Shown here in pieces: positions 1,086 through 12,674 of a stretch of DNA of 64,000 nucleotides (the first letter of the stretch is position 1; every line of letters begins with the position of its first letter). The stretch spans positions 1 through 64,000 of IMG/VR virus record IMGVR_UViG_3300032268_000832. One strand, 5' to 3'. The notes below the pieces were generated by a model. The model did not search any database and was not told the origin of the DNA. It worked only from the letters and a program-made list of their open reading frames with translations. The translations under genes were made by a program, and so were the position numbers.

Positions 1086-1165
1086 AAAAAAAAATGTTAA
1101 AATTTTTGGTAGTGTAAAATAATTGTTATACATTTGTATCGTTAAACCAATTAAATTATATCGTT

Positions 1166-1489
1166 ATGGATTATGTTAATAAAGTTCTTATTTCACTGAC
1201 CGACAATTATGGGTTTGAGTTTGGTAAGAATTACAAAGTTGTTTCTGACAATGGTCGAGAATTAGAATTTGAGAACGGACAACGTTTCTTCAAAGATAGA
1301 ATTGATTTGCATTTTGGCAAAAACTATTCAGAACTATTTGCCAAAGTAAAATATATTGTTGATACCAAAGAAATAGAAAACCATAAATTGTGTATTGAAA
1401 ATATTAGATTGGATAATAGAGTTATCAATAACAAAAAGAAGTTTGCCGAGAACGATAAGTATATCAACCGACTTAAAAAACTTTTGTAA
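1166..1489 (+). CDS. hypothetical early protein (107 aa)
   Basis: ORF behind promoter-leader repeat. Confidence 0.8.
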   Translation: MDYVNKVLISLTDNYGFEFGKNYKVVSDNGRELEFENGQRFFKDRIDLHFGKNYSELFAKVKYIVDTKEIENHKLCIENIRLDNRVINNKKKFAENDKYINRLKKLL

Positions 1490-1551
1490 ATATATTTGGT
1501 AGTGTAAAATATTTGTTATATCTTTGCATAGTTAAACCAATTAAATTAGTT

Positions 1552-1833
1552 ATGGCACATTCAAAAGAATTAATAGCTTTCAAAAAAAGTTTTGAAACCA
1601 ATACAAATATTAAAGTTTTTGGTGTTGAAGAAAATAGAACTTATTATCATTGGAAACGATTGATATTACCAAGTTTAAATTGTCAGGATATGTTAAAAGT
1701 TTCAAACTACATTTCAAACAATTTTTCAACACCAAATAAATTTACTCACTTACAAGTTTCATTGGGAACATATAATGGTAATTTAACCTTAACTTGTGAT
1801 GTTACATATATTAAAGAATTTATTATTAAATAA
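1552..1833 (+). CDS. hypothetical early protein (93 aa; start moved from 1513 to ATG 1552)
   Basis: The track's TTG start lies inside the promoter; ATG 1552 follows the conserved leader. Confidence 0.75.
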   Translation: MAHSKELIAFKKSFETNTNIKVFGVEENRTYYHWKRLILPSLNCQDMLKVSNYISNNFSTPNKFTHLQVSLGTYNGNLTLTCDVTYIKEFIIK

Positions 1834-1839
1834 CCCAGT

Positions 1840-1854
1840 GTACACATTTGTGTC
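1840..1854 (+). promoter_or_regulatory. second-class palindromic motif GTACACATTTGTGTC (also at 8743-8757, 11638-11652, variant 12108-12122)
   Basis: Interrupted palindrome ACACA-TT-TGTGT, 32-35 nt upstream of an ATG in three copies. Confidence 0.55.
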
Positions 1855-1886
1855 ATACACGTATAACCAATTAAATTAAATGACTT

Positions 1887-2306
1887 ATGTATGAAGTTAA
1901 TGAGATAGTAAAAGATTTAATAAAAACCGAAACAGGTATTGATATAAACGAAACAAGCCGATTAAGACCGATAGTTGAAATACGTTCACTTTATTATAAA
2001 ATAGTAAGGGAATTAGCACCAACACAAAGTTATCATCTTATTGGTAAGAGTGTGAAAAAAGACCACGCAAGCGTTATGTATGGTATTGCACAATTTGAGT
2101 TATATGCCAAGTATAATAAGCGTTTAATGTTACATTATCATAATATTAAAAATGCGTTCCTTAAACTTTATGACCATAACAATATTATTGCTTTGGATAT
2201 GGAAATTCAAATATTGGAGTATAAAATAAAAATGCTTAAAGAAAAAAGACTTGAATTAATTAATGCAACAATATTAGAGAATGGTGTTTCTGAACAGCAA
2301 GGGTAA
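1887..2306 (+). CDS. DnaA C-terminal (domain IV)-like HTH protein
   Basis: SRLRPIVEIRSLYYKIVRE...IGKSVKKDHASVMYG resembles the DnaA domain IV signature (IG..F.RDHTTV.HA). Confidence 0.6.
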   Translation: MYEVNEIVKDLIKTETGIDINETSRLRPIVEIRSLYYKIVRELAPTQSYHLIGKSVKKDHASVMYGIAQFELYAKYNKRLMLHYHNIKNAFLKLYDHNNIIALDMEIQILEYKIKMLKEKRLELINATILENGVSEQQG

Positions 2307-2394
2307 GGATTGGTATATTATAAAGGGATATAAAATATGGGCGGAAAGCAAAGAACAAGCCGAACAATTATATGAAAAAATAAAAAATTTTTAA
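2281..2394 (+). CDS. small hypothetical protein (37 aa, MVFLNSKGKDWYIIKGYKIWAESKEQAEQLYEKIKNF)
   Basis: Hand-translated; overlaps the previous gene's end and fills the gap before the next promoter. Confidence 0.45.
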   Translation: MVFLNSKGKDWYIIKGYKIWAESKEQAEQLYEKIKNF

Positions 2395-2462
2395 TAATAA
2401 ATTTGGTATATTAAAAAATTGTTATATATTTGCACTCACAAACCAATTAAATTTATTATATT

Positions 2463-2732
2463 ATGACAAGACAATTTACTGAAAGAATTGAATACAAAGG
2501 CACACGCTTTGAATCTAAAGTGGGTGTTGAATTTGACCAAGAAAATTGGAATGAGCTTTGGAATAAGGGTGTTATGAATGAAAACCAAATTGTATTGGCA
2601 AATGATTGGGAAACCACTTTTCCACCAAACAAATGGGGTACAAAGTATTCAAAGTATATGTATAGTGCAACGCTTGACAGATTAAGAGCGTGTACCTTTG
2701 GCGAGTTTTATGGTGGTGGTATCGTTGATTAA
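2463..2732 (+). CDS. hypothetical early protein (89 aa)
   Basis: ORF behind promoter-leader repeat. Confidence 0.8.
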   Translation: MTRQFTERIEYKGTRFESKVGVEFDQENWNELWNKGVMNENQIVLANDWETTFPPNKWGTKYSKYMYSATLDRLRACTFGEFYGGGIVD

Positions 2733-2744
2733 ATTAAATGACTT

Positions 2745-2951
2745 ATGAAACTATTAAAAAAATTAGTCAATTTAAACACTGGGTATTGGCTTGAAACACG
2801 TTTATATCAATACAAAGGTAAACTTGAAATTGGTTATGTTCTTTATCAAGGATATACCATATTTGGAATAAATGGTAAAGATAGAATTAATGTTTATGTT
2901 GATTTAAAAGACGCTAAAGAAGATTTAGAAAAACTTAATTTAACTGATTAA
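2745..2951 (+). CDS. hypothetical early protein (68 aa)
   Basis: Preceded by short leader ATTAAATTAAATGACTTATG. Confidence 0.75.
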   Translation: MKLLKKLVNLNTGYWLETRLYQYKGKLEIGYVLYQGYTIFGINGKDRINVYVDLKDAKEDLEKLNLTD

Positions 2952-2963
2952 ATTTAATAACTT

Positions 2964-3257
2964 ATGAAAAATAAAGAATTTGGGTTAGTATTAGATTTAA
3001 CTTGGTTAGAAACCAATGAAAGTGTGTTTGCAATATTGGAACGATTTGCAATTAATTTTTATCGTTTTGTTAATAACAAACACGAAATTAAATTAAATGA
3101 CGATAAAGATAAATTATGCGAGTTTCTTAAATCAAATAATATTGATTTCACTTGTGAAGTTAGCAGAGCAGATGAAAAAGATTTTTGGGTTTCATTTGAA
3201 TTAAAAGCTGATACCTATTTAGACGTTACAGACCGAATTGAATTAAGAGCAAGATAA
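2964..3257 (+). CDS. hypothetical early protein (97 aa)
   Basis: Preceded by ATTAAATTTAATAACTTATG leader. Confidence 0.75.
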   Translation: MKNKEFGLVLDLTWLETNESVFAILERFAINFYRFVNNKHEIKLNDDKDKLCEFLKSNNIDFTCEVSRADEKDFWVSFELKADTYLDVTDRIELRAR

Positions 3258-3269
3258 ATTAAATGGCTT

Positions 3270-3437
3270 ATGTTATACGATGAAAATAACCGAGTTATGA
3301 TTAACTCAATTAGTGAAGTAAACAACGCTAAATATAGAGTATCACTAAAAAGAAAAATTAGAAAATTTATACCTAAAGTATTACATAGTTCAATTAATAA
3401 TTTAAGTACAGAAACTTTAGAAAATATTTCATTTTAA
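3270..3437 (+). CDS. hypothetical early protein (55 aa, below track cut-off)
   Basis: Leader ATAAATTAAATGGCTTATG; hand translation MLYDENNRVMINS...ENISF. Confidence 0.6.
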   Translation: MLYDENNRVMINSISEVNNAKYRVSLKRKIRKFIPKVLHSSINNLSTETLENISF

Positions 3438-3508
3438 TATAAAAATATTTGGTAGTTTAAAATATTGTTATATCTTTGCACTCACAAACCAATTAAATTA
3501 AATGTATT

Positions 3509-4006
3509 ATGGAAAATTCAATTTTAAATTACGACTTAACAACATTAAAAAATATTGTTAATAAAAAAAATGTTAATGAAATTATTTTTAAAATTTTTGA
3601 TGACGATAAAAAACCAAATTGGACACCATTAATAAAAGTGGCTACTTTAAAAAAGAAAAGAGAAGAAAATTTAAGATACAATGGGGTTGTTAGTTCGTTT
3701 AATTCTAATGACGATTATAAGTTAGCTAAACTACTTATCAATAGTGGTGCTGATTTAAACTATCAAGATAAAAACGGAAATACCGCTTTGATTTATTGTG
3801 TTTATTATAATAATATTAAATTATTAAAATTATTAATTAAGTCAGGTGCTGATTTGAACATAAAAGATAATAATGGTTCAAGTGCATTAATAATTGCGGG
3901 TTATTCAAATAAATTTAATATTGGCGACATTTTAATTAAGTCAGGTGCTGACCAAAGAATAAAAAATAATAACGGAGATAATTATAGTATCTTTTTAAAT
4001 AAATGA
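3509..4006 (+). CDS. ankyrin-repeat protein
   Basis: Repeats LLINSGADLNYQDKNGNTAL / LLIKSGADLNIKDNNGSSAL / ILIKSGADQRIKNNNG. Confidence 0.9.
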   Translation: MENSILNYDLTTLKNIVNKKNVNEIIFKIFDDDKKPNWTPLIKVATLKKKREENLRYNGVVSSFNSNDDYKLAKLLINSGADLNYQDKNGNTALIYCVYYNNIKLLKLLIKSGADLNIKDNNGSSALIIAGYSNKFNIGDILIKSGADQRIKNNNGDNYSIFLNK

Positions 4007-4299
4007 AATACATAGACGATTTAAGTTTCTCAAACATTATCAATTTGATACAAGGAGAAGAAATAAAAGGTGCTGATATTCTAAATAATATCGCACACGA
4101 AATGGAAGAAAATAATAAAATAATTGAAAAACTTGAAAGCGATTTGGCTCGTGCTAAAAGTCGTAAAGGTGTTTTAATTGAAGGTTCTCAAAGAGTATTA
4201 CAACACTTGAAAAAAGAATATCCGTTAGCAGTTCAAAGGAATGGTTACATAGTTGTGGTTACAAAAGAAAAAATATCAATTGAACGCAATGTCTTGTAG
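4003..4299 (+). CDS. hypothetical protein (98 aa, coiled-coil), followed by attC-like hairpin
   Basis: ORF track; overlaps ankyrin gene stop. Confidence 0.7.
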   Translation: MKYIDDLSFSNIINLIQGEEIKGADILNNIAHEMEENNKIIEKLESDLARAKSRKGVLIEGSQRVLQHLKKEYPLAVQRNGYIVVVTKEKISIERNVL

Positions 4300-4304
4300 C
4301 ATTA

Positions 4305-4440
4305 CTGCCAACGTTTGATGATTGTATTAGTAGCGTTCTAAAATTACCAAACGTTTCAGATTAAAAATTAGATTACAATAAAACGCAAAACATTAAATTA
4401 TTCACAAACGTAGCTATTGATACAATTATTTGTTAGTAGC
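4305..4440 (+). mobile_element. solo attC-like inverted-repeat element
   Basis: CTGCCAAC-gttt-[18 bp stem 4317-4334 / 4413-4430, four G-T pairs]-t-GTTAGTAG. Confidence 0.5.
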
Positions 4441-4460
4441 TGTGTTTAAATTCAAAAATT

Positions 4461-4688
4461 ATGGAAAAATCAGCAGTACAATTTTTAGTGATAAAATTAG
4501 AAGAATTAATGTTAAAAAATGACTTCAATGAAATTTCAGATGAAGAATATTTGAAAGAAAAAGAAAATATTTTGATTATATCTAAACATAAAGAAAAAGA
4601 AAATATGATTAACTTTTTAAAGTCAGTTTTTCAACAAGAAAATTTTGATTATGAAAAAGCTTATAACGATTTTTTAAAACAAAAGTAA
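4461..4688 (+). CDS. hypothetical protein (75 aa)
   Basis: ORF starts 20 nt after the attC-like site. Confidence 0.75.
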   Translation: MEKSAVQFLVIKLEELMLKNDFNEISDEEYLKEKENILIISKHKEKENMINFLKSVFQQENFDYEKAYNDFLKQK

Positions 4689-4689
4689 A

Positions 4690-4887
4690 ATGATAAAAGT
4701 AAATTTAAAATTAATTAGTGAATTTCTCCCGTCAAAAGAAGAAGAAATTGAAATTACATTAGCTGAAATTATTGAATTAGCTAAAGAAAAAATAAAAAAT
4801 CAATATGAAAATGATGTTTATAATACTATTATTTATAAAGGATTTTCTTTTACAGATTCATTAAAAGAAAAAGAAGATATAAAATAA
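4690..4887 (+). CDS. hypothetical protein (65 aa)
   Basis: Tightly coupled ORF. Confidence 0.65.
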   Translation: MIKVNLKLISEFLPSKEEEIEITLAEIIELAKEKIKNQYENDVYNTIIYKGFSFTDSLKEKEDIK

Positions 4888-4944
4888 TTTTTTTATTTCG
4901 GAAATATTTCATATATTTGCATAACAATTTAAAAACAAATAGAA

Positions 4945-5400
4945 ATGAAACTAATAAAAATGACAGATTATATTTCACAAAAAAGAGATATAATAGACGA
5001 AGAAATGAGTAACGAAGACAGATTAACTATTTTACAATGTATTTTTGATTATAGTAAATTTTTAAAGACACCCTTAAAGTTAGATATGTTTATCCCTTGT
5101 GATGAAAAAATGAACATTTTAAAAAAACCTAAAAACAAAAGTAATTTAGGTAGTGGAAAAACTGATAGCGTTGAATTGTTAAAATACGAAAACAAGTTAA
5201 GAGATTACAGTTTTGCACTATCAAAGGTGTTATTTAAAGATTTTCATTTACACAAAGATGATGAAGATAACTTTAAAAAATGTGTTGCTACTCCTGGTTT
5301 TGTTTTACCATTTGAAGTATTATACACAATGAAAATTGAGGATATAGTTGATAACGATATTAAACTTACAAGTTTCGGACTTGCCACAATACATCAATAA
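4945..5400 (+). CDS. hypothetical protein (151 aa)
   Basis: ORF after a degenerate TAtaTTTG promoter. Confidence 0.8.
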   Translation: MKLIKMTDYISQKRDIIDEEMSNEDRLTILQCIFDYSKFLKTPLKLDMFIPCDEKMNILKKPKNKSNLGSGKTDSVELLKYENKLRDYSFALSKVLFKDFHLHKDDEDNFKKCVATPGFVLPFEVLYTMKIEDIVDNDIKLTSFGLATIHQ

Positions 5401-5509
5401 TTTAGTATAGTGTTTGTCGAAAATAAATAAAAAAGTTTTTAATAATTGTTTGGTAGTTTAATTAATTGTTATATATTTGCACTCACAAACCAATTAAATT
5501 TATTTAGTT

Positions 5510-5716
5510 ATGAGCAAATATCAAACAAAAATAGTTGACGCATTAAAAAACGGAGCTAAATTACAATGCACAGAGGGTGCTAATTATAAAACGTGGTTAG
5601 TTTACCCTAATGGTAAAATAGAAAATATTAGACGTGATTCAGCAAATAAAGTTTGTTTAGATTATGAAAATAAATTAGTGTTTGGGTTAAATGAGGGTAT
5701 AAGTTGGAAAAAATAA
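5510..5716 (+). CDS. hypothetical early protein (68 aa)
   Basis: ORF behind promoter-leader repeat. Confidence 0.8.
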   Translation: MSKYQTKIVDALKNGAKLQCTEGANYKTWLVYPNGKIENIRRDSANKVCLDYENKLVFGLNEGISWKK

Positions 5717-5726
5717 TTTTAATAAA

Positions 5727-5933
5727 ATGGAAGTCAAGTTAAAAAATGATGGCGAAAAAACCCCTAAAAGTATTCAAGCTGAAATTGAATTGAATAATAA
5801 AACAGATGATTGGGGTTATTTTAATCTTAAAATAATTGGATATGGAGGGAATGTTACACACGCTAAAATTAACTTAAAATATCAAATAGATGATTTAATT
5901 ACTGAACTACAAAATTTTAAAAATAGTTTATAA
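5727..5933 (+). CDS. hypothetical protein (68 aa)
   Basis: ORF track, A-rich leader. Confidence 0.7.
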   Translation: MEVKLKNDGEKTPKSIQAEIELNNKTDDWGYFNLKIIGYGGNVTHAKINLKYQIDDLITELQNFKNSL

Positions 5934-6003
5934 TTTATAATCTATACACACCAATATAGTTAAATTTTCGTTTTTTCAGTATATTTATATATAAAAAAAT
6001 AGT

Positions 6004-6264
6004 ATGGAAAACGAAATGAGAAAACACATTGACAAGTTTAATAATTTTATTAAAGAAGATATTATTAATAAAGGGGTTAAAACATCAACTAGGTTAGTTC
6101 AAGTTGATTATGAAGGTAAAAAAATGAACGCTGTTGCTATTGGATACGCATCTGGTCCTTATTTTAAGGAAGTTTATTATTTATTAGACGATATTCAATA
6201 TGATAATAATGATTTTAATAATGTAAAAGAAATTAATGGCTCGGATTTAATTATTGGTAGTTAA
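6004..6264 (+). CDS. hypothetical protein under a late-type promoter (86 aa)
   Basis: ATATTTAT at 5981-5988; N-terminus MENEMRKHIDKFNNFIKE ends in I-x-E. Confidence 0.75.
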   Translation: MENEMRKHIDKFNNFIKEDIINKGVKTSTRLVQVDYEGKKMNAVAIGYASGPYFKEVYYLLDDIQYDNNDFNNVKEINGSDLIIGS

Positions 6265-6280
6265 TTTTTTTTGGTATTAT

Positions 6281-6368
6281 ATAAATTAAATAACCCACTT
6301 AAAAAAAAGTGGGTTATTTATTTGGTATATTAAAATATTGTTATATCTTTGCACTCACAAACCAATTA
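6281..6368 (+). repeat. 88 bp perfect direct repeat, copy 1 (terminator + promoter + leader)
   Basis: Identical to 11033-11120; contains hairpin AATAACCCACT/AGTGGGTTATT. Confidence 0.9.
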
Positions 6369-6426
6369 TAAAAGTACAAAACAGAAAACAAATTAATAAC
6401 CAAAGCCTTAATTGCTACAATATATT

Positions 6427-6717
6427 GTTATGCATTCGGCTTTTTATCCACAATTATTATGGCAATTAAAATAGATGAATCACAGGAATATTTATTTGAA
6501 AAAAATCAAAATGTATGTGTTGTAGGTAAATTTCCAATCAATGCGACAAGATTATTTGTAACTAAACAAAAGAAAATAATAAAAGGCTATTGCACTTCTT
6601 GGTGGCAAAATGGTGGTCATTTTAAATCTTCTTTTTTGATTCTAAACGAAAGTTGCTCACAAGCTGATGCATAACGTTTTGCGTATAAAAAATCGTTTTA
6701 ATGTTTTTTATACGATG
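6427..6717 (+). mobile_element. integron-cassette-like unit 1 (one ORF plus attC-like hairpin)
   Basis: Starts GTTATGCATTCGGCTT; the gene ends in the complementary AAGCTGATGCATAAC (stop TAA inside TAAC); 11 bp stem 6682-6692/6704-6714; next GTT at 6717. Confidence 0.6.
6459..6674 (+). CDS. cassette-borne hypothetical protein (71 aa)
   Basis: Stop codon embedded in the TAAC inverse-core-like box. Confidence 0.7.
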   Translation: MAIKIDESQEYLFEKNQNVCVVGKFPINATRLFVTKQKKIIKGYCTSWWQNGGHFKSSFLILNESCSQADA

Positions 6718-6909
6718 TTATAAGATAGTATTTTTTGTGATAAAAGAAGCACCAAATGGTTGCTCAATGTAAAGATACCAACAATAAGGGTAGCGGGTGT
6801 ACAAAAGACCGTTTTAATACTATTTCGTTGGGTTTGGGTGGATGAAACTATAACTGCGGTTGAAACGTACCGTTCACAAAAAATATTTTTTATAACTAAT
6901 ATATGTTAT
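6717..6909 (+). mobile_element. integron-cassette-like unit 2 (non-coding or mini-ORF cargo)
   Basis: Start GTTATAAGATAGTATTTTTTGTG (6717-6739) pairs with end CACAAAAAATATTTTTTATAAC (6875-6896); followed by GTTAT at 6905. Confidence 0.55.
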
Positions 6910-7046
6910 TAATATTTGTTAACATTAATGAAATCAATACTTTAGTATAGTGTTTGTCGAAAATAGATAAAAAAGTTTTCTAAATATTTGGTAGTTTAAA
7001 ATATTGTTATATCTTTGCATCGTTAAACCAATTAAATTATATCGTT

Positions 7047-7205
7047 ATGAGTTCAAATAAAATGATTAAAAAATTATTATCAATAAATAATAATTATAAT
7101 AAAAAATGGTTAAAATCTTTATCTAAAGATTATTTAAACAAATTACTTATTGATAATATGATTATATCACAAGGTTGTCAAAATAAATTGATGTTAAATT
7201 TTTAA
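7047..7205 (+). CDS. hypothetical early protein (52 aa)
   Basis: ATG directly after promoter-leader 6987-7046; hand-translated. Confidence 0.55.
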   Translation: MSSNKMIKKLLSINNNYNKKWLKSLSKDYLNKLLIDNMIISQGCQNKLMLNF

Positions 7206-7219
7206 TTTTAAAATTAATT

Positions 7220-7630
7220 ATGGCTACAATAGAAAAAAAAGAATTTGCTTTATCACAATTAGCACCTTATTACGCTAACCCAAGCACTTGTGGGTATGAT
7301 AAAGAAAAGAAAACTTGTGAATACCTTACAACCGATGGGCGTATGTGTGTTGCAGGAAAGAATATGATTGAACCTAAAATTGGTTTAGTCAAGGGTATTG
7401 ATGATATACTTGCTGATTTAGACCACGAACAAGAGGGTTTATTTAAACCCGAAGTTGTTGGAATTTTAACATCAGTTGAATGGCGACGTATGCAATGTAT
7501 TCACGATAGTATTGCATTAGAACCAAACGACAAAGTTAGACTTAAAGTAACAATATTGCGATTAAATTTATTCACGATTGAAGAATTTGAGGAACGTGCA
7601 GAATTATTAAAAAATAATTTGGTAGTTTAA
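7220..7630 (+). CDS. hypothetical protein (136 aa)
   Basis: ORF track; Cys motifs CGY, CEY, CVAG. Confidence 0.8.
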   Translation: MATIEKKEFALSQLAPYYANPSTCGYDKEKKTCEYLTTDGRMCVAGKNMIEPKIGLVKGIDDILADLDHEQEGLFKPEVVGILTSVEWRRMQCIHDSIALEPNDKVRLKVTILRLNLFTIEEFEERAELLKNNLVV

Positions 7631-7677
7631 ATAATTGTTATATCTTTGCACTCACAAACCAATTAAATTAAATTGAT

Positions 7678-7956
7678 ATGAATTTAGTAGATAAAAGCGA
7701 ATTAGGAAATATTGAAGAAACTAAAATAATAGAATATAAAAATGGTGTTATTCAAGGTATTAAATTAGTTAGAACTAAAGCAACAGGGGAAGTTAGAACA
7801 CAATATATTGCTTATTTAAAACATAGTGTTTACCCAAGTGGAATTTTACGTTTTGAAACTTGTTTAAATGGTGGTGTTATTACAAACGTAAATCAAGCAA
7901 TTAACCAAGCAAAAATATTTGTTGATTGGAAAACAACAAAAGATTTGGTAAATTAA
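7678..7956 (+). CDS. hypothetical early protein (92 aa)
   Basis: ORF behind promoter-leader repeat. Confidence 0.8.
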   Translation: MNLVDKSELGNIEETKIIEYKNGVIQGIKLVRTKATGEVRTQYIAYLKHSVYPSGILRFETCLNGGVITNVNQAINQAKIFVDWKTTKDLVN

Positions 7957-8005
7957 AATAATTGTTATATCTTTGCACTCACAAACCAATTAAAACACTT
8001 AAACA

Positions 8006-8221
8006 ATGAAAAAATTAGTAGTATTATTTATCGTTTCAATAACATTCGTTTCTTGTTATTCAACCAAAGAAATTGTTGATGTACCATTAAAAGATGTTTA
8101 CATTCAATATAAAGAAACTAAATATCAAGTGTATAGATGTAGTGATAAATTTAATTATATTCTTAAATTAGACAAAAAAGGTAGATTGATTAGACAACAA
8201 GTTTATCTTGGTATAAAATAA
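8006..8221 (+). CDS. putative lipoprotein (71 aa)
   Basis: MKK + hydrophobic stretch + lipobox FVS-C17. Confidence 0.7.
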   Translation: MKKLVVLFIVSITFVSCYSTKEIVDVPLKDVYIQYKETKYQVYRCSDKFNYILKLDKKGRLIRQQVYLGIK

Positions 8222-8273
8222 ATATTTTTATATATTTGCACTCACAAACCAATTAAATTAAATTAAATGTATT

Positions 8274-8597
8274 ATGGCAGTTACTAATAGATACGCAAAA
8301 AGACTTCTTTTGGTTGATGAACTAATCAAGTTGAAGTATGATGTTTCCCCGAAGAAAATTAGTCCAAGAAAAAAGAGTTATATTATATCGAAAGATAATA
8401 TAATTTATAGAATGGATTTTAATACTGATTGGGTTACAATTAATCAAGACCAAGATAAATTGTATTGCGGAATAAATTTATTGAGTGGTAAAAGAATTGC
8501 TAATTGTATGGATAATCATTTGGTAAAGTTATTTAATGATGTTGTAGGTATTTTATATAATAAAACTAATATTAACGTACCAACAATTATTTTATAA
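8274..8597 (+). CDS. hypothetical early protein (107 aa)
   Basis: ORF behind promoter-leader repeat. Confidence 0.8.
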   Translation: MAVTNRYAKRLLLVDELIKLKYDVSPKKISPRKKSYIISKDNIIYRMDFNTDWVTINQDQDKLYCGINLLSGKRIANCMDNHLVKLFNDVVGILYNKTNINVPTIIL

Positions 8598-8663
8598 AAA
8601 TATTTGTGAGTGTAAATTATTTGTTATATATTTGCACTCACAAACTAAATTATTCAGTTATAT

Positions 8664-8741
8664 ATGAAAACTAAAAAAATTAAATGGCACAAATATTTTA
8701 TTGTTGCCTTTGGTATATGGTTAATAAATTTATTATCATAG
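8664..8741 (+). CDS. small membrane peptide (25 aa, MKTKKIKWHKYFIVAFGIWLINLLS)
   Basis: Has its own promoter (8603-8634); basic N-terminus plus hydrophobic helix. Confidence 0.55.
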   Translation: MKTKKIKWHKYFIVAFGIWLINLLS

Positions 8742-8825
8742 TGTACACATTTGTGTCTATTACGCGTAGTACTCATTAAATTAAATTATATGACAACGAT
8801 ATATAAACCAACAAATTAAAAAAAA

Positions 8826-9152
8826 ATGAAAGTATTAACAGCAGAATTAGTAGCATCGAATAAAAGAGAACGAATCTCTGGCGGTGTCTACATTGAATTT
8901 GAAACAACTGAAAATGTGAAAAAAGATGACTACTTTAAAGTAAAAGTAGAAGACTTTAGTTATGATTTTCAAGCAAATGGAGTAAAAGTAGAAGGGGATA
9001 AATTGAAAGTAACAGCAAGAGAAGTTGGATATTGGGCACAAAAACTTGACAGAAAGGGCGTTGATTTGAGATTAGTTATCGGAAGCGATGTAATTGCTGT
9101 TACTGATGAATCAGAAAAGTCTAAAATATACGAAAGGTCTTGTTGGTGTTAA
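8826..9152 (+). CDS. hypothetical protein (108 aa)
   Basis: ORF track. Confidence 0.8.
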   Translation: MKVLTAELVASNKRERISGGVYIEFETTENVKKDDYFKVKVEDFSYDFQANGVKVEGDKLKVTAREVGYWAQKLDRKGVDLRLVIGSDVIAVTDESEKSKIYERSCWC

Positions 9153-9169
9153 CAAATGTATTTAATTAT

Positions 9170-9224
9170 GGTAAAGTAAAATAATTGTTATATCTTTGCA
9201 CTCACAAAACCAATTAAATTTATT
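9170..9224 (+). repeat. 55 bp perfect direct repeat, copy 1 (copy 2 at 9617-9671), flanking one gene
   Basis: GGTAAAGTAAAATAATTGTTATATCTTTGCACTCACAAAACCAATTAAATTTATT in both copies. Confidence 0.9.
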
Positions 9225-9229
9225 CAGTT

Positions 9230-9610
9230 ATGATAATACAAATAAAACAATACAAATATGAGAAGACCGAAACGTCTTCAATGGATTTAGAGTTGCCAGA
9301 AGAAACGACTTATTTTTTTGAAACTCACGTTAGACGTTCAATAAGAATTAAACCCATATTCACAACGTGGAACAAGGTACGATACGACAAAGAAGAAGAA
9401 TTGTATTATTTTGAGGTTACTTGTGTTTATTTGTCTTCTAAATGTAAGATTGAGAAGTTTAGAGTTAATTTAGACGATTTCAAAAAAGATAAAGAGGTAA
9501 TTCAAAAGGATAACTTTTTAAATGCGTGGGTTAATGATTGGTTTGACAAGCGAACCAAAGAGCAGTTTGATGTTGATTTGAAAATAGCTATTGATAAAAT
9601 AAATGAATAA
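9230..9610 (+). CDS. hypothetical early protein (126 aa)
   Basis: ORF behind promoter-leader repeat. Confidence 0.8.
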   Translation: MIIQIKQYKYEKTETSSMDLELPEETTYFFETHVRRSIRIKPIFTTWNKVRYDKEEELYYFEVTCVYLSSKCKIEKFRVNLDDFKKDKEVIQKDNFLNAWVNDWFDKRTKEQFDVDLKIAIDKINE

Positions 9611-9676
9611 TTATTTGGTAAAGTAAAATAATTGTTATATCTTTGCACTCACAAAACCAATTAAATTTATTGTATT

Positions 9677-10066
9677 ATGAAAATCAATTTAGTAGAAGTA
9701 CCAAGACCAATGGTAAGCAGTTTTATGATGTTTGCTGAACCTGACTTAAATTTATTAAGAGAAACCAAAACAATAAGAGTTTCTTTTCATCACATTACCA
9801 AAACAAGAATTTCAACAAGTATTCAGTTTGGAGAATATTGTGTTAAAGCCAATAAATTTATTGACGGATATAAAATGCACAAAGACGTACAATGGAATCA
9901 TTTTAGTAGCGGACAACAAACAAGCCATTATTTTGTTAAATCAAAAAAACAAAATTATGATGTTTATAAAGAGTTTGTCATTAAATTAATTGAGAGCGTA
10001 ATAAAAGATAATTTCAAAATGGAATTAGACGAAATTACCATTAATTTGGAACAAAGAGAATTTTAA
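9677..10066 (+). CDS. hypothetical early protein (129 aa)
   Basis: ORF behind promoter-leader repeat. Confidence 0.8.
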   Translation: MKINLVEVPRPMVSSFMMFAEPDLNLLRETKTIRVSFHHITKTRISTSIQFGEYCVKANKFIDGYKMHKDVQWNHFSSGQQTSHYFVKSKKQNYDVYKEFVIKLIESVIKDNFKMELDEITINLEQREF

Positions 10067-10149
10067 CAAAATTTTAACATTTTCCCACTTGTATTAGTGG
10101 GAAATTGTTTTACCTTTGCACTCACAAAACCAATTAAATTTATTGAATT

Positions 10150-10614
10150 ATGAAAAAAGTATTATTAGTATCAGTATTATTTTTAGTTTCTACATTAACA
10201 TTTTCACAATGTTATAGAAGTAAAAGAAATTACGATAGAGAAAGTCATTTTGGACTTGTTGCTAACATCGGTACACTTAAATCATTAGGTGGCGAAATTT
10301 ACGTTAAATTTAATAACCATATAATCGGTGGCGGTTATGCAGGGGAAATTAATGGTGCTAAAGTGGTATCAGAAGAATTTAAAAACGAAACACTATATTT
10401 AACCTATGGTTATCAATATGAAAAATATACCTTTGGTGTTAGATATGGTAAACAAAATAAAGCAAGTTGGATTGATACAACTACAAAAGAAGTAACTCCT
10501 TATTCAACAATGGTTGGCGGTTATATGGGTTACAATTTTACGAATAAAGTTGCTATTAATTTAGGTTACGATACATTTAGCCAAGTAACAATAGGTATTG
10601 TTATGGGGTTATAA
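10150..10614 (+). CDS. secreted, outer-membrane beta-barrel-like protein (154 aa)
   Basis: Sec signal MKKVLLVSVLFLVSTLTFS|Q; alternating G/Y/aliphatic strands (YLTYGYQY, YTFGVRYG, VAINLGY). Confidence 0.6.
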   Translation: MKKVLLVSVLFLVSTLTFSQCYRSKRNYDRESHFGLVANIGTLKSLGGEIYVKFNNHIIGGGYAGEINGAKVVSEEFKNETLYLTYGYQYEKYTFGVRYGKQNKASWIDTTTKEVTPYSTMVGGYMGYNFTNKVAINLGYDTFSQVTIGIVMGL

Positions 10615-10662
10615 ACAATAAAATTAATATCCATAATGTTAATTTGATTTAAAGTTGATTTG

Positions 10663-10700
10663 AATAAGGGTTGTTAAATTTAACAATCCTTATTTTTTTT
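10663..10700 (+). terminator. intrinsic terminator
   Basis: AATAAGGGTTGTTA-aatt-TAACAATCCTTATT plus T run. Confidence 0.75.
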
Positions 10701-10775
10701 TTTAGTATTTGTTTGGTATATTAAAATATTGTTATATATTTGCATAGAATTAATAACCAATTAAATTAAATCATT

Positions 10776-11033
10776 ATGGGACACGAACAATTATTTAACG
10801 CATCAGAGCAACAACTTGCAGATTTTTGTCAAGCAAACATTAACAACAAAATGCAGTTAACACTCAAAGGACAAGGCAATTTTAAACACATTTCAGCAGT
10901 AGGATTGAATATTTGTTGTGTAAGTGTTAGAATGCTCGGGAAAGATAGTTATTATTACTTTGGTTGTATTAGAGCGCATATATATAACGAACTATTATAT
11001 AAGTTTGACCATAGACATAAACGCAGAAGTTAA
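10776..11033 (+). CDS. hypothetical early protein (85 aa)
   Basis: ORF behind promoter-leader repeat. Confidence 0.75.
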   Translation: MGHEQLFNASEQQLADFCQANINNKMQLTLKGQGNFKHISAVGLNICCVSVRMLGKDSYYYFGCIRAHIYNELLYKFDHRHKRRS

Positions 11034-11120
11034 TAAATTAAATAACCCACTTAAAAAAAAGTGGGTTATTTATTTGGTATATTAAAATATTGTTATATCT
11101 TTGCACTCACAAACCAATTA
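11033..11120 (+). repeat. 88 bp perfect direct repeat, copy 2
   Basis: Identical to 6281-6368. Confidence 0.9.
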
Positions 11121-11132
11121 AATTATTTAGTT

Positions 11133-11261
11133 ATGAAATCAATTTCAGTTTCTTTTTACGCTAAAACTTCTGACAACAAAGAAGTTAAATTAGAACAAAA
11201 TCCGTTTGTTGAAGTGTATCTTAAAACACCAAAAGAAACAACCCTTATTTGTGTTAATTAA
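11133..11261 (+). CDS. hypothetical early protein (42 aa; start corrected)
   Basis: The track's start at 11061 lies in the terminator; ATG 11133 follows the leader. Confidence 0.6.
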   Translation: MKSISVSFYAKTSDNKEVKLEQNPFVEVYLKTPKETTLICVN

Positions 11262-11281
11262 CCCAATAAATTAAATGACTT

Positions 11282-11548
11282 ATGAATGTAGATAATAAAC
11301 TAATAGCAGAATTTTTAGGTTACTCACAACCGCACCCTGATTATCCTGATACAACATATTGGTATAAAAAAGACTTTCCACCACTTACAATATTATCTTT
11401 TGACACTGATTGGAATTGGTTAATACAAGTAGTAAAAAAGATTGAGAGTTTGAACAAATTAGATAGTGTATTAATAAACACTGACATCAAAGAAGTTTAC
11501 AACGCTTGTGTAGAATTTATTAAGTGGTATAACGAACAACCTAAATAA
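11282..11548 (+). CDS. hypothetical protein (88 aa)
   Basis: Leader AAATTAAATGACTTATG. Confidence 0.8.
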   Translation: MNVDNKLIAEFLGYSQPHPDYPDTTYWYKKDFPPLTILSFDTDWNWLIQVVKKIESLNKLDSVLINTDIKEVYNACVEFIKWYNEQPK

Positions 11549-11559
11549 ATTAAATCACT

Positions 11560-11631
11560 ATGAAAAAATTAATTATTATAAAAGCAGTTATATTACTTGT
11601 AGTGATACTATTAATCTATCTTTTAAGATAA
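11560..11631 (+). CDS. small membrane peptide (23 aa, MKKLIIIKAVILLVVILLIYLLR)
   Basis: Leader AAATTAAATCACTATG; almost wholly hydrophobic. Confidence 0.55.
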   Translation: MKKLIIIKAVILLVVILLIYLLR

Positions 11632-11686
11632 GGTTATGTACACATTTGTGTCTATTACGTATATAACCAATTAAATTTAATGAATT

Positions 11687-11977
11687 ATGTCAGAATTAGT
11701 AACCAATAGCACCACAGATAATAAATTGATGTGGAGAGTAAATACACCTCAATTACTTAAAGAAATTATGCAAAATAATGAAGTGGCAATATTATCAAAA
11801 CCACTTGAAATATTTGCTACAATACTTGCAGAAGTAGGGGAAAGAGCAAGTGAATTAAATGACCCTAAATTAAACGCTCTTATGTGTCGTTTGGCAATAT
11901 ATGAAGTTGCAGACCCATACGACAAAGAATATAATTCAGAGTTAACCAATGATACAATAAAAAAAGGATACCAATAA
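11687..11977 (+). CDS. hypothetical protein (96 aa)
   Basis: Follows the second-class motif and leader. Confidence 0.8.
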   Translation: MSELVTNSTTDNKLMWRVNTPQLLKEIMQNNEVAILSKPLEIFATILAEVGERASELNDPKLNALMCRLAIYEVADPYDKEYNSELTNDTIKKGYQ

Positions 11978-12006
11978 ATTAAACCACAACCAACACAACA
12001 ACCAAG

Positions 12007-12030
12007 AAACGCCCCAAAAGGGCGTTTTTT
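12007..12030 (+). terminator. terminator closing the early array
   Basis: AAACGCCC-caaaa-GGGCGTTT plus T run. Confidence 0.8.
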
Positions 12031-12141
12031 TATTGTTTAAAGCGTTTTTATTCAAAAATGGTATATTGATACCAAAATTAATTAAACGTGCCTTAAAACG
12101 TATGTATGTACACTTTTGTGTCAGCGCCCACGTGCAAGGCA

Positions 12142-12269
12142 AATAAATTAAACCTCGTGAATAAATTAAACCTCGTGAATAAATTAAACCTCGTGAATAA
12201 ATTAAACCTGATGAATTAAACCTGATGAATTAAACCTGATGAATTAAACCTGATGAATTAAACCTGATG
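12142..12269. repeat. iteron-like tandem repeats (core AATTAAACCT x8)
   Basis: 3x AATAAATTAAACCTCGTG, 1x AATAAATTAAACCTGATG, 4x AATTAAACCTGATG; AT-rich tract at 12270-12323. Confidence 0.9.
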
Positions 12270-12323
12270 AATAAATTTATTTAGTTATTGCAGCATAAAA
12301 TAATAAATAAATAAATTTATTAT

Positions 12324-12537
12324 CACGTATGCGTGTAGCGTGTGTATGTGTGTGTATGTATGCGTGTAGCGTGTGTATGTGTGTGTATGTATGTGCGTAG
12401 CGTGTGTATGTGTGTGTATGCGTGTGTATGCGTGTGTATGCGTGTGTATGCGTGTGTATGCGTGTGTATGTGTGTGTATGCGTGTGTATGCGTGTGTGCG
12501 TAGCGTGTGTGCGTAGCGTGTGTGTGCGTATGCGTGT
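12324..12537. repeat. alternating purine-pyrimidine (TG/CG/TA) microsatellite-like tract
   Basis: Units TATGCGTGTAGCGTGTGTATGTGTGTGTATG and CGTGTGTATG repeated. Confidence 0.9.
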
Positions 12538-12674
12538 TGATTATTATTAAATTAATAACACTAAAAAAAAATTTAAAGTTTTTTATCTTTTTTGTTGTAT
12601 ATTAAATTTATTTTATATCTTTGCGGTGTTCAAAAAGAACGAAATTAAATTTTTAATCATTAAATTCTTACATT

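Follow-up and report, generated by a model that had tools for sequence, protein, structure and literature searches.

A T4-like jumbo phage of flavobacteria (IMG/VR record IMGVR_UViG_3300032268_000832, 306 kb) carries two small, swappable gene cassettes bounded by GTTA/TAAC and by hairpin sites that resemble integron attC sites. They lie at positions 6371-6955 of the window, the 64,000-nt stretch of this record that was analysed. In close relatives of the phage the same slot is empty or filled differently, and the same cassette type is common in flavobacterial phages and genomes. We read the region as an integron-like (CALIN-like, i.e., a cluster of attC-type sites without an adjacent integrase) cassette array, and give this reading a probability of about 0.68; the recombinase has not been identified, and "site-specific" is therefore an inference.

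Anatomy of the two-unit array

All features described here are on the plus strand. The sequence observations of the original prediction, two units each running from GTT to AAC with each end complementary to the unit's own start, were confirmed in every detail. Unit 1 (6427-6675) starts with GTTATGCATTCGGCTT (6427-6442) and ends with AAGCTGATGCATAAC (6661-6675), whereas unit 2 starts with GTTATAAGATAGTATTTTTTGTG (6717-6739) and ends with CACAAAAAATATTTTTTATAAC (6875-6896), its last five nucleotides (6892-6896) being ATAAC. Duplex energies are -18.1 kcal/mol for the unit 1 arms and -17.9 kcal/mol for the unit 2 arms. ATATAT(T)GTTAT occurs at both outer edges. The array follows an early promoter of the Bacteroidetes type (-33 TTTG, -7 TATCTTTG) with a standard leader ending in AACCAATTA (6321-6368), one of 15 near-identical copies in window 1-12.6 kb. 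The next copy (6988-7034) drives the 52-aa and 136-aa ORFs. Relatives break synteny exactly at 6368. The segment 6371-6426 is the 3' half of an attC-like hairpin module, the 5' half of which has been replaced by the promoter-leader; it aligns base for base with the 3' half of a complete hairpin in another IMG/VR locus (L061), with the identity ending right after GTT. Unit 1's own hairpin is truncated by the promoter.

The cargo of unit 1 is a 71-aa ORF (6459-6674) of unknown function, the last 4-5 codons of which are the 3' arm, its TAA stop lying inside ATAAC. A PHROG profile search gave only a weak hit to a family of unknown function. A homologue (P0002, 84% identical, 64 aa) in another phage context lacks the C-terminal residues and both arms. 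The cargo of unit 2 (6740-6874) is 40% GC and holds only a 29-aa ORF (6756-6845), being either a micro-ORF or an ORF-less cassette. The possibility that unit 2 is a structured non-coding RNA was rejected: the whole unit folds well (z=-3.3), but this comes from the arms, since the interior is no more structured than shuffles (z=+0.23). No Rfam 15 family matched at the gathering threshold in the window or in 13 array-bearing loci, only chance-level hits appeared at relaxed thresholds, and neither tRNA nor tmRNA was found by ARAGORN. A DNA similarity search of a phage database with window 5400-8000 returned nothing similar, and in IMG/VR only the source contig was recovered for ORF71, its neighbour and unit 2. 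Unit 2 was found only in this phage.

Between the two units lies a short attC-like hairpin site (6671-6721), reading ATAAC-G-TTTTG, a perfect 11-bp stem (6682-6692/6704-6714), the loop TCGTTTTAATG and AT-GTTAT. What looks like a terminator at 6682-6714 is a short version of the family hairpin described below. A stretch of 28 nt including the loop is identical to a site in Polaribacter phage P12002L, next to one that Qi et al. 2023 (PMC9892861) predicted as an attC site, and the loop is shared with their P12002L_attC1. A second, full-size hairpin site is found outside the array at 4307-4435 (GCCAAC-G ... GTTAGTAGC), preceding the 75-aa ORF at 4461, with 16 of 16 pairs in an architecture scan.

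The right flank of the array (6897-6955) is attI/attP-like, TAATATAT-GTTAT-TAATATTT-GTTAAC..., and aligns with the region just upstream of a Xer/IntI-like tyrosine recombinase gene in temperate flavobacterial phages. This gene is absent here. An exact-match scan of JGI metagenome contigs for the flank found nothing.

Cassette alleles and the wider family

Precise presence or absence at the unit boundaries in relatives had been named in advance as the test of a cassette mechanism, and it came out positive. Close relatives show four alleles at TAAC|TAATATATGTTAT: the slot empty, hairpin plus unit 2, hairpin plus a 129-aa gene, and hairpin plus a 75-aa gene. Relative L168 lacks window 6676-6891 exactly, with the two ATAAC copies merged into one; L166, like the window, carries hairpin plus unit 2; L004 carries a different hairpin plus a 129-aa ORF unit in the same slot; and L164 joins yet another cassette to the same TAAC|TAATATATG junction. 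All four junctions fall inside ATAAC, the resolution being limited to these shared 5 nt. The samples that hold the different alleles are JGI 3300032268, 3300046009 and 3300042868 and SRR27205370, and a 178-kb ENA scaffold is identical to the phage contig across this locus. The second site behaves in the same way, as L164 diverges from the window exactly after GCCAAC|G and carries a different hairpin plus unit there. One correction is needed: the units first delimited are the arm-bounded cargo, while the block that comes and goes at this locus (6676-6891) is the hairpin plus the unit to its right, with the exchange point at the AAC on the 5' foot of the hairpin. Whether the left or the right hairpin generally travels with a unit was also examined, but no pair of similar units flanked by long hairpins on both sides exists in the data analysed.

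Taken alone in an AT-rich window, the unit 1 arms would not stand out, as they were not among the 25 longest of 97 inverted repeats; it is the family evidence that makes them significant. An ungapped GTTAT...ATAAC scan of the window gave only noise, partly because GTTAT is part of the promoter -7 region, and the exact TTCGGCTT motif occurs only once in the window. Unit 1 belongs to a family of at least 49 distinct units with the arms GTTAT-NNN-TTCGGCTT and AAGCTGA-N'N'N'-ATAAC (GTTAT-GCA-TTCGGCTT and AAGCTGA-TGC-ATAAC in unit 1). The three variable bases are perfectly complementary in 48 units and wobble-paired in one, across six base combinations. Across arrays, the 8 nt beyond GTTA/TAAC pair at 7 or more of 8 positions with the unit's own other end in 67% of 79 units, compared to 6.8% for the neighbour across the hairpin (n=133) and 5.6% for random pairs (Mann-Whitney p=2e-16). 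The rule that a cassette's start complements its own end and not its neighbour's thus holds across the whole family.

The imperfect hairpins between units (50-130 nt) have a fixed asymmetric shape, TAAC-G, a 4-nt bulge, 4 bp, a C.A mismatch, a long stem, then N-GTTA, conserved while the sequence varies. There are 131 such sites in the loci examined against 1 in a reversed-sequence control, the dominant spacer class being 5 nt / 1 nt. In 55 hairpins there are 137 G.T pairs, 117 of them with G in the 5' arm, alongside the conserved bulge, the C.A mismatch and a large loop; canonical attC bottom strands are likewise enriched in G:T mispairs and purines and are cut in AAC (PMC5027507). Whole-hairpin folding energies, however, do not differ between the two strands, and the unpaired bulge sits on the AAC arm, whereas canonical extrahelical bases sit on the opposite arm (PMC5027507), so the evidence on whether one strand is the better folder in the attC manner points both ways. 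In phage loci 34 of 34 ORFs lie on the folding strand, but in bacterial loci 15 of 19 units have the ORF on the opposite strand. The structure thus does not follow transcription, which argues for a DNA-level element.

The same 497-nt unit occurs at about 99% identity in three viral contigs (L022, L042 and L049), the flanks of which become unrelated beyond GTTAT and ATAAC. A recombinase link exists in some arrays. In L075 a 267-aa Xer/IntI-like integrase starts 53 nt after the array's last TAAC. In L157, L160 and L162 a cassette 3' arm abuts AAC|TACTATATGTA 45-60 nt upstream of homologous integrase genes, while in prophage L158 the same point abuts host DNA. Integrase adjacency is not a general rule, being absent within 10 kb of the Flavobacterium caseinilyticum array and in most IMG/VR loci. 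No protein family common to all array-bearing loci was found, although methyltransferases and HNH/AP2 proteins recur. The idea that the last hairpin marks the start of one conserved downstream gene was dropped, as the downstream genes are unrelated.

An integron-like reading and its closest known systems

The interpretation put forward originally, integron-like cassettes with self-complementary ends, is supported by these results, with the refinements given above on the exchange point, the truncated hairpin and the unidentified enzyme. The anatomy is what the analysis shows: cargo segments start with GTTA and end with TAAC, a further 8-16 nt of each unit's start are complementary to its own end, and the segments are separated by hairpins which, on the strand that folds with G.T pairs, have the shape described above with an 11-15 bp stem, a loop and a stem before N-GTTA. 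The mechanism is inferred. We propose that in a free circular cassette the two arms pair, extending the TAAC/GTTA "R box" at the foot of the hairpin and giving one folded single-stranded recombination site. A tyrosine recombinase would exchange strands at the AAC on the 5' foot, as IntI does at attC bottom strands, and would insert or remove the block C-G-hairpin-GTTA-cargo-TAA at a recipient AAC, here the TAAC|TAATATATGTTAT site at 6892-6909. That site looks like the attP/attI core found right upstream of the Xer/IntI-like integrase gene in temperate relatives. In this view, the phage has lost that gene, at least at this locus, and the enzyme would act in trans, from a prophage, the host, or elsewhere in the 306-kb genome, while the cassettes are transcribed from the upstream early promoter.

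Several findings speak against this reading. No tyrosine recombinase was found in the window, either by tblastn or among the best 25 of 43 Pfam families from 33 ORFs of at least 200 aa (the 242 kb of the contig outside the window were not searched), or near most arrays. The integrase family that sometimes adjoins arrays is also an ordinary prophage integrase (L158), so that its adjacency could be coincidental; it lacks the IntI-specific insert, scoring 208 bits in two stretches against a TIGR02249 cut-off of 265, and is closest to XerA structures. The window's sites (GCATAAC/GTTATAA and TTATAAC/GTTATTA) deviate from the R-box consensus RYYYAAC/GTTRRRY, as originally stated, although some family members fit it, for example CGCCTAAC/GTTAGGC in L075; the conserved core is (A/C)TAAC / GTTA(T/G). 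Wobble pairs favour the sense strand, as also stated originally. Exchange points are seen at both feet of the hairpin, which a strict one-strand integron mechanism does not predict. A deletion between two 5-nt ATAAC repeats could also arise by slippage, and no circular cassette has been observed. Of the two P12002L sites tested with IntI1, attC2 recombined, whereas attC1, the published site closest to the window hairpin, did not (PMC9892861); recombination was not assayed in the present work.

The closest known systems are integron gene cassettes, in particular the CALINs reported in phage genomes (PMC9892861). As in these, AAC...GTT-bounded imperfect hairpins of about 50-130 nt lie between small, mostly unannotated genes, each cassette's start complements its own end, exchange is consistent with the AAC on the 5' foot of the G:T-pairing strand (PMC5027507), relatives show precise cassette presence, absence and replacement, DNA methyltransferases are frequent cargo, and the window's hairpin is homologous to sites in the published P12002L CALIN region. 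Differences are the lack of IntI (the only recombinase seen next to some arrays being the 267-aa Xer/XerA-like enzyme), the phage genes on the folding strand (the reverse of canonical cassettes), own-end pairing over 8-22 nt instead of about 7, the R-box deviations, the bulge on the AAC arm, exchange also at the GTT foot, and a nearest published site that was not a substrate for IntI1.

Sedentary chromosomal integron arrays with homogeneous attC sites (for example Vibrio VCRs) are comparable to the long arrays in Flavobacterium, Kaistella and Lacinutrix genomes, where sites of about 125 nt and conserved shape lie between small ORFs that are mostly antisense to the folding strand, and one near-identical hairpin precedes many unrelated genes. 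However, IntegronFinder surveys report essentially no complete integrons in Flavobacteriia (PMC9024848), and no IntI was seen beside the arrays sampled here. In CTX-type filamentous phages (IMEX elements), a folded single-stranded attP is recombined by host XerCD. A Xer-family recombinase acting on a hairpin formed by one DNA strand would fit the Xer-like integrase family, the strand asymmetry and the lack of a dedicated IntI, but those elements integrate whole phage genomes at dif and do not build arrays of small gene cassettes; no dif-like site was examined here.

A bolder possibility, which we consider doubtful but which is not excluded, is that Flavobacteriia and their phages carry a previously unrecognised integron-like system, in which a simple Xer-type phage integrase, or the host Xer machinery, would recombine folded hairpin sites and the phage attP core would double as the cassette insertion site. 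Phage cassettes would be built in mirror orientation, with the gene on the folding strand, and would spread even into virulent T4-like jumbo phages that lack the enzyme. This would be a second, independent route to cassette-based gene capture and a major driver of accessory-gene flux in these phages.

Integrons are thought to be nearly absent from Flavobacteriia, and phage-borne attC clusters have only been reported as rare curiosities. Here one cassette architecture recurs in dozens of uncultivated phage contigs, in the isolated Flavobacterium phage 11b (where it is unannotated), in Polaribacter phage P12002L, in many Flavobacterium, Kaistella and Lacinutrix genomes, and in a T4-like jumbo phage whose natural population is polymorphic for cassette content. 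If an enzyme is confirmed, this would give a tractable system for asking how gene cassettes are made and moved outside the IntI world, would explain how small accessory genes such as methyltransferases and likely anti-defence genes flow between temperate and virulent phages, and would show that current integron finders miss a whole clade of elements.

Alternative explanations

Two weaker rivals, both unlikely, survive about equally well. The first, already raised as an alternative in the original prediction, is an RNA-level element. On the phage transcript, the arms and hairpins would form long stems bracketing each cistron, like the processing stems around rRNAs or RNase III sites in phage early mRNAs, and would control mRNA processing, stability or termination, gene swapping being a by-product of recombination between these conserved motifs. 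In line with this, the ORF is on the strand that folds with G.U pairs in all 34 phage units, and a C-to-T change in the unit 1 3' arm of L004 (TGT instead of TGC) keeps a G.U/G.T pair on the plus strand only. A bulged C and tandem U.G/G.U are conserved in the 15-bp stem, a 13-bp hairpin in the leader covers the ORF71 start codon, and attC sites are said to act as weak terminators (PMC9892861). However, the antisense position of the same architecture in bacterial arrays implies that its conservation does not depend on being in the mRNA. Neither the alleles with junctions inside ATAAC nor the homology of the flank to an integrase-proximal site is explained by RNA function, no Rfam family matches, and a phage 11b unit with mismatched arms persists.

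The second is modular shuffling by homologous or microhomology recombination alone, analogous to the promoter-stem-loop (PeSL) modules of T4-type phages (PMC2839356, PMC4122927), in which the shared arms (two dominant variants, CAC and GCG), the hairpins and the TAAC/GTTA repeats would simply provide short homologies for the phage's own recombination machinery. The phage is T4-like, the region is of the same kind (early, hyperplastic, with small ORFs), and the repeated promoter-leaders mark synteny breakpoints (6368) as described for PeSLs. The 99%-identical unit of L022, L042 and L049 is bounded at the outer edges of 15-16-nt arms that many units share, exchange is seen at both hairpin feet, and no recombinase is conserved nearby. 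The cassette junctions examined, however, lie at AAC/GTT (ATAAC) next to structured hairpins, outside the promoter repeat, and so do not fit the PeSL pattern; units carry self-complementary ends and also occur in unrelated siphovirus-like phages and in bacterial chromosomes. Most units outside the TTCGGCTT subfamily have unique arms that pair only with themselves and offer no homology between cassettes, yet own-end complementarity is kept. The asymmetric architecture with covarying stems implies selection on a folded structure and not on sequence homology, and four different left partners join at one 5-nt point.

Still less likely is single-strand transposition of the IS200/IS605 (HUH) type, in which the hairpin would be the strand-specific recognition element of a non-autonomous palindrome-associated element inserting 3' of a TAAC target. 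The hairpin is strand-asymmetric, and insertion lies immediately 3' of TAAC with no target-site duplication beyond it. No TnpA-like gene turned up among the protein families shared by array-bearing loci or in the contexts examined; as no dedicated search was made for a Y1 HUH transposase, membership of this class is left undecided. The elements have one hairpin per unit rather than one at each end, long Watson-Crick pairing between unit ends is not a feature of that family, and in several loci the array end abuts a tyrosine-recombinase core site. Finally, chance inverted repeats plus an ordinary intrinsic terminator, suggested by the 97 inverted-repeat pairs and the terminator-like 11-bp stem, are refuted by the family-wide covariation, the architecture statistics and the allele data, and the hairpin is not followed by a T run.

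Promoter-leaders and arm-bounded units of the early region

The contig IMGVR_UViG_3300032268_000832, of which the window is the first 64 kb, is 306 kb long, and window coordinates equal contig coordinates. Pfam hits among the large ORFs (Gp23 major capsid, T4-type Gp20 portal, prohead protease and T4-type terminase) show a T4-like jumbo myovirus. The window also encodes a ClpB-like AAA+ protein, thymidylate synthase, a non-specific endonuclease, a STAND-like NTPase and leucine-rich-repeat proteins (33069-35570, minus strand, a tentative assignment; the Pfam summary does not say which ORF carries which family). The first 12.6 kb is an early region of small ORFs, among which an ankyrin-repeat protein of 165 aa (3509-4006) sits in the shuffled early genes of this phage lineage (window and relatives L164-L174). 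Most of the small ORFs lie behind one of fifteen near-identical promoter-leaders of about 66 nt (1100-12650) with the Bacteroidetes -33/-7 pattern, of the form ...TTTGG...TTGTTATATCTTTGCACTCACAAACCAATTAAATT...ATG. Close relatives carry the same small genes in different orders, with synteny breaking at the end of this repeat, for example at 6368, which matches the PeSL-type modular shuffling described for T4-type phages. Directly upstream of the promoter lies a GC-containing hairpin, AACCCACTT-AAAAAA-AAGTGGGTT (6275-6332), the promoter-proximal part of which (AAAAAAAAGTGGGTTATTTATTTGGTATATTAAAATA) recurs identically before the promoter at 11090 (11040-11100); this is probably a terminator fused to the promoter module.

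The original prediction described two units with self-complementary ends, and every one of its statements about the sequence is correct. The arms of unit 1 form a 15-bp duplex with one bulged C and a tandem U.G/G.U (-18.1 kcal/mol), while those of unit 2 form 22 bp with one bulge (-17.9 kcal/mol). Within this AT-rich stretch the unit 1 pair would not be remarkable on its own, its significance comes from relatives. A scan of IMG/VR for TGTTATNNNTTCGGCTT returned at least 119 loci, about a third of which carry AAGCTGA-N'N'N'-ATAAC 180-800 nt downstream. Over all sequences examined there are 49 distinct such units, each enclosing one or two small ORFs, and the NNN triplet is perfectly complementary in 48 and wobble-paired in one, across CAC, GCG, GCA, CAT, AAC and GCC. 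P0002, the close homologue of the 71-aa ORF of unit 1 (ORF71), sits in an unrelated phage context and lacks both arms and the last residues that encode the 3' arm. The arm is therefore a nucleic-acid element that the ORF reads into.

The proposed rule, that the end of a unit is complementary to its own start rather than to that of its neighbour, holds generally. When the 8 nt beyond GTTA/TAAC were compared, the start of a unit paired with its own end at 7 or more of 8 positions in 67% of 79 units, with the end of the neighbouring unit across the hairpin in 6.8% of 133 cases, and in 5.6% of random pairs (p=2e-16). The cultured Flavobacterium phage 11b (NC_006356) has an unannotated five-unit array of this kind in its genes 3-6 region (1440-3060), which includes a 150-nt unit with an uncalled 46-aa ORF and one unit (gene 4) whose two arms do not match and which looks like a recombinant.

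Hairpin modules and alleles in relatives of the phage

Between units lies a second element, which reads (A/C)TAAC-G, four unpaired bases, 4 bp, a C.A mismatch, a stem of roughly 15 bp, a 50-90-nt loop, the return strand, one base, then GTTA(T/G), with TAACG pairing with YGTTA at the foot. Stem sequences differ between sites but stay paired. G.T pairs are frequent (137 in 55 sites), and 117 of them have the G in the 5' arm; the folding energies of whole hairpins, however, do not differ between strands, and the bulge lies on the AAC arm, unlike canonical extrahelical bases. A scanner for this architecture found 131 sites in the loci examined against 1 in reversed-sequence controls, the 5-nt/1-nt spacer class being dominant. 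In several arrays (L075 at 2180-3311, a phage locus in which the array lies between the terminase subunit genes, and also L026, L032, L023, L062 and L164) the start codon of the following gene lies inside the hairpin loop, so that the 3' arm of the hairpin and the GTTA arm are translated as the N-terminus, for example ...SPNLAKRVLGD.

In the window, the "terminator" between the two units is a short version of this module (6671-6721). Positions 6371-6426 are the 3' half of a long version, the complete copy of which is in the IMG/VR locus L061, while the 5' half has been replaced by the promoter-leader. In the long leader of ORF71 a 13-bp hairpin pairs TTAATTGCTACAATA (6408-6422) with TATTATGGCAATTAA (6455-6469) and covers the ATG; as one of its arms is the 3' arm of the truncated module, the start codon may be sequestered by a leftover of the recombination site. 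A complete site (GCCAAC-G ... GTTAGTAGC) lies at 4307-4435 in front of the 75-aa and 65-aa ORFs. The unit that follows it has no matching 3' arm in the window (AGCTACTAAC was not found downstream).

Precise presence or absence at the unit boundaries in relatives had been put forward in advance as the criterion for a cassette mechanism, and exact-protein look-ups of the flanking genes retrieved relatives of this very phage from other samples. L166 is identical to the window over the locus. L168 is 99% identical up to 6675 and resumes at 6892, the block 6676-6891 (short hairpin plus unit 2) being exactly absent and the two ATAAC copies merged into one. L004 has in that slot a 115-nt hairpin plus a 129-aa ORF unit with its own matched arms, GTTATCACTTCGGCTT...AAGCTGAGTGATAAC, whereas L164 joins a different hairpin plus a 75-aa ORF unit (arms GTTAGCGGT/ACCGCTAAC) to the same right flank. 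So four different left partners meet the sequence TAATATATGTTATTAATATTTGTTAAC at one point. Starting from the empty allele, insertion of C-G-hairpin-GTTA-cargo-TAA at AA|C reproduces the window exactly, while insertion at the G|TT on the other side of the hairpin does not. At 4307 the window and L164 likewise diverge exactly after GCCAAC|G, where L164 carries a different hairpin plus unit. Exchange is also seen at the GTT foot of the hairpin. Elsewhere, a 497-nt unit is about 99% identical in three viral contigs whose flanks become unrelated immediately outside GTTAT and ATAAC.

Nature of the element and candidate recombinases

In phage loci the ORF of every unit is on the strand that folds with G.T pairs (34 of 34), which on its own would favour an RNA role. 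A scan of one genome per species, however, found the same units and hairpins in 32 loci, mostly in Flavobacterium, Kaistella, Lacinutrix and other Bacteroidota genomes, some being arrays of 6-8 units, and in those bacterial loci the ORFs are mostly on the opposite strand (15 of 19). The structure is therefore conserved regardless of which strand is transcribed, which points to a DNA-level element. In bacteria the geometry is the canonical integron one: the folding, G:T-rich strand is antisense to the genes, and exchange is at the AAC on its 5' foot (PMC5027507).

No recombinase was found in the window, and no protein family is shared by all array-bearing loci, however, there is a recurrent link in a subset. 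In L075 the last cassette (GTTAGGCGAT...ATCGCCTAAC) ends 53 nt before a 267-aa tyrosine recombinase gene, and a homologue (L150) lies at the same end of the Kaistella array, next to a tRNA gene. The link is not universal, as no integrase lies within 10 kb of the Flavobacterium caseinilyticum array. The family is large and flavobacterial, and among solved structures it is closest to archaeal XerA and then to the Vibrio integron integrase. The Kaistella homologue reaches NCBI's "XerA/integron integrase" model, while the L075 protein scores 163 bits against the 220-bit cut-off of that model; both fall below the integron-integrase cut-off, and their matches come in two stretches, consistent with lacking the IntI insert.

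In three further loci (L157, L160 and L162) a cassette 3' arm abuts AAC|TACTATATGTA 45-60 nt upstream of such genes, and in the prophage of L158, a Flavobacterium sp. chromosome, host DNA abuts the same point, which marks it as the core site of the integrase. The right flank of the array in the window aligns with this integrase-upstream region, down to the AATCAATACTT...TA motif that precedes the start codon, but the gene itself is missing. In L158 (1000-5600) a chromosomal cassette array lies about 4.4 kb from the attachment junction of the prophage, whose integrase belongs to the family seen next to phage arrays, and three host genes separate the array from the junction. Several arrays (L042, L061, L067 and L106) end just upstream of a conserved 60-aa protein (MK.YTKTKVIRISESQL.TLQKMKSYNVDVG.FIR.AI.EKI...), located just after the last ATAAC|T of the array. 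Judging by eye this protein may be ribbon-helix-helix-like, so it could be a regulator or a directionality factor.

Relation to published attC clusters

The paired-end array anticipated by the original prediction is real, and its interpretation as integron-like is supported: of the readings considered it is the best supported one, although it remains a reading, while the sequence features and alleles were observed directly. The element is best regarded as a phage-borne attC-type cassette cluster. Clusters of this kind are already known: Qi et al. 2023 (PMC9892861) predicted clusters of attC sites in 17 phages, including Polaribacter phage P12002L, and showed that IntI1 recombined five of six tested sites. 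We found no paper describing the present family, its arm rule, its orientation reversal in phages or its link to Xer-like integrases, although a text search cannot prove absence, and IntegronFinder surveys report almost no integrons in Flavobacteriia (PMC9024848). The P12002L region holds cassettes of exactly this type, methyltransferase and Mom-like genes with matched GTTA.../...TAAC ends. The cargo of unit 2 in the window is either a 29-aa ORF or non-coding. One hairpin of P12002L (30958-30905, minus strand) shares 28 nt with the short hairpin of the window, including the loop TCGTTTTAATG. The published P12002L_attC1 has the same loop, and it was the one site that IntI1 did not recombine.
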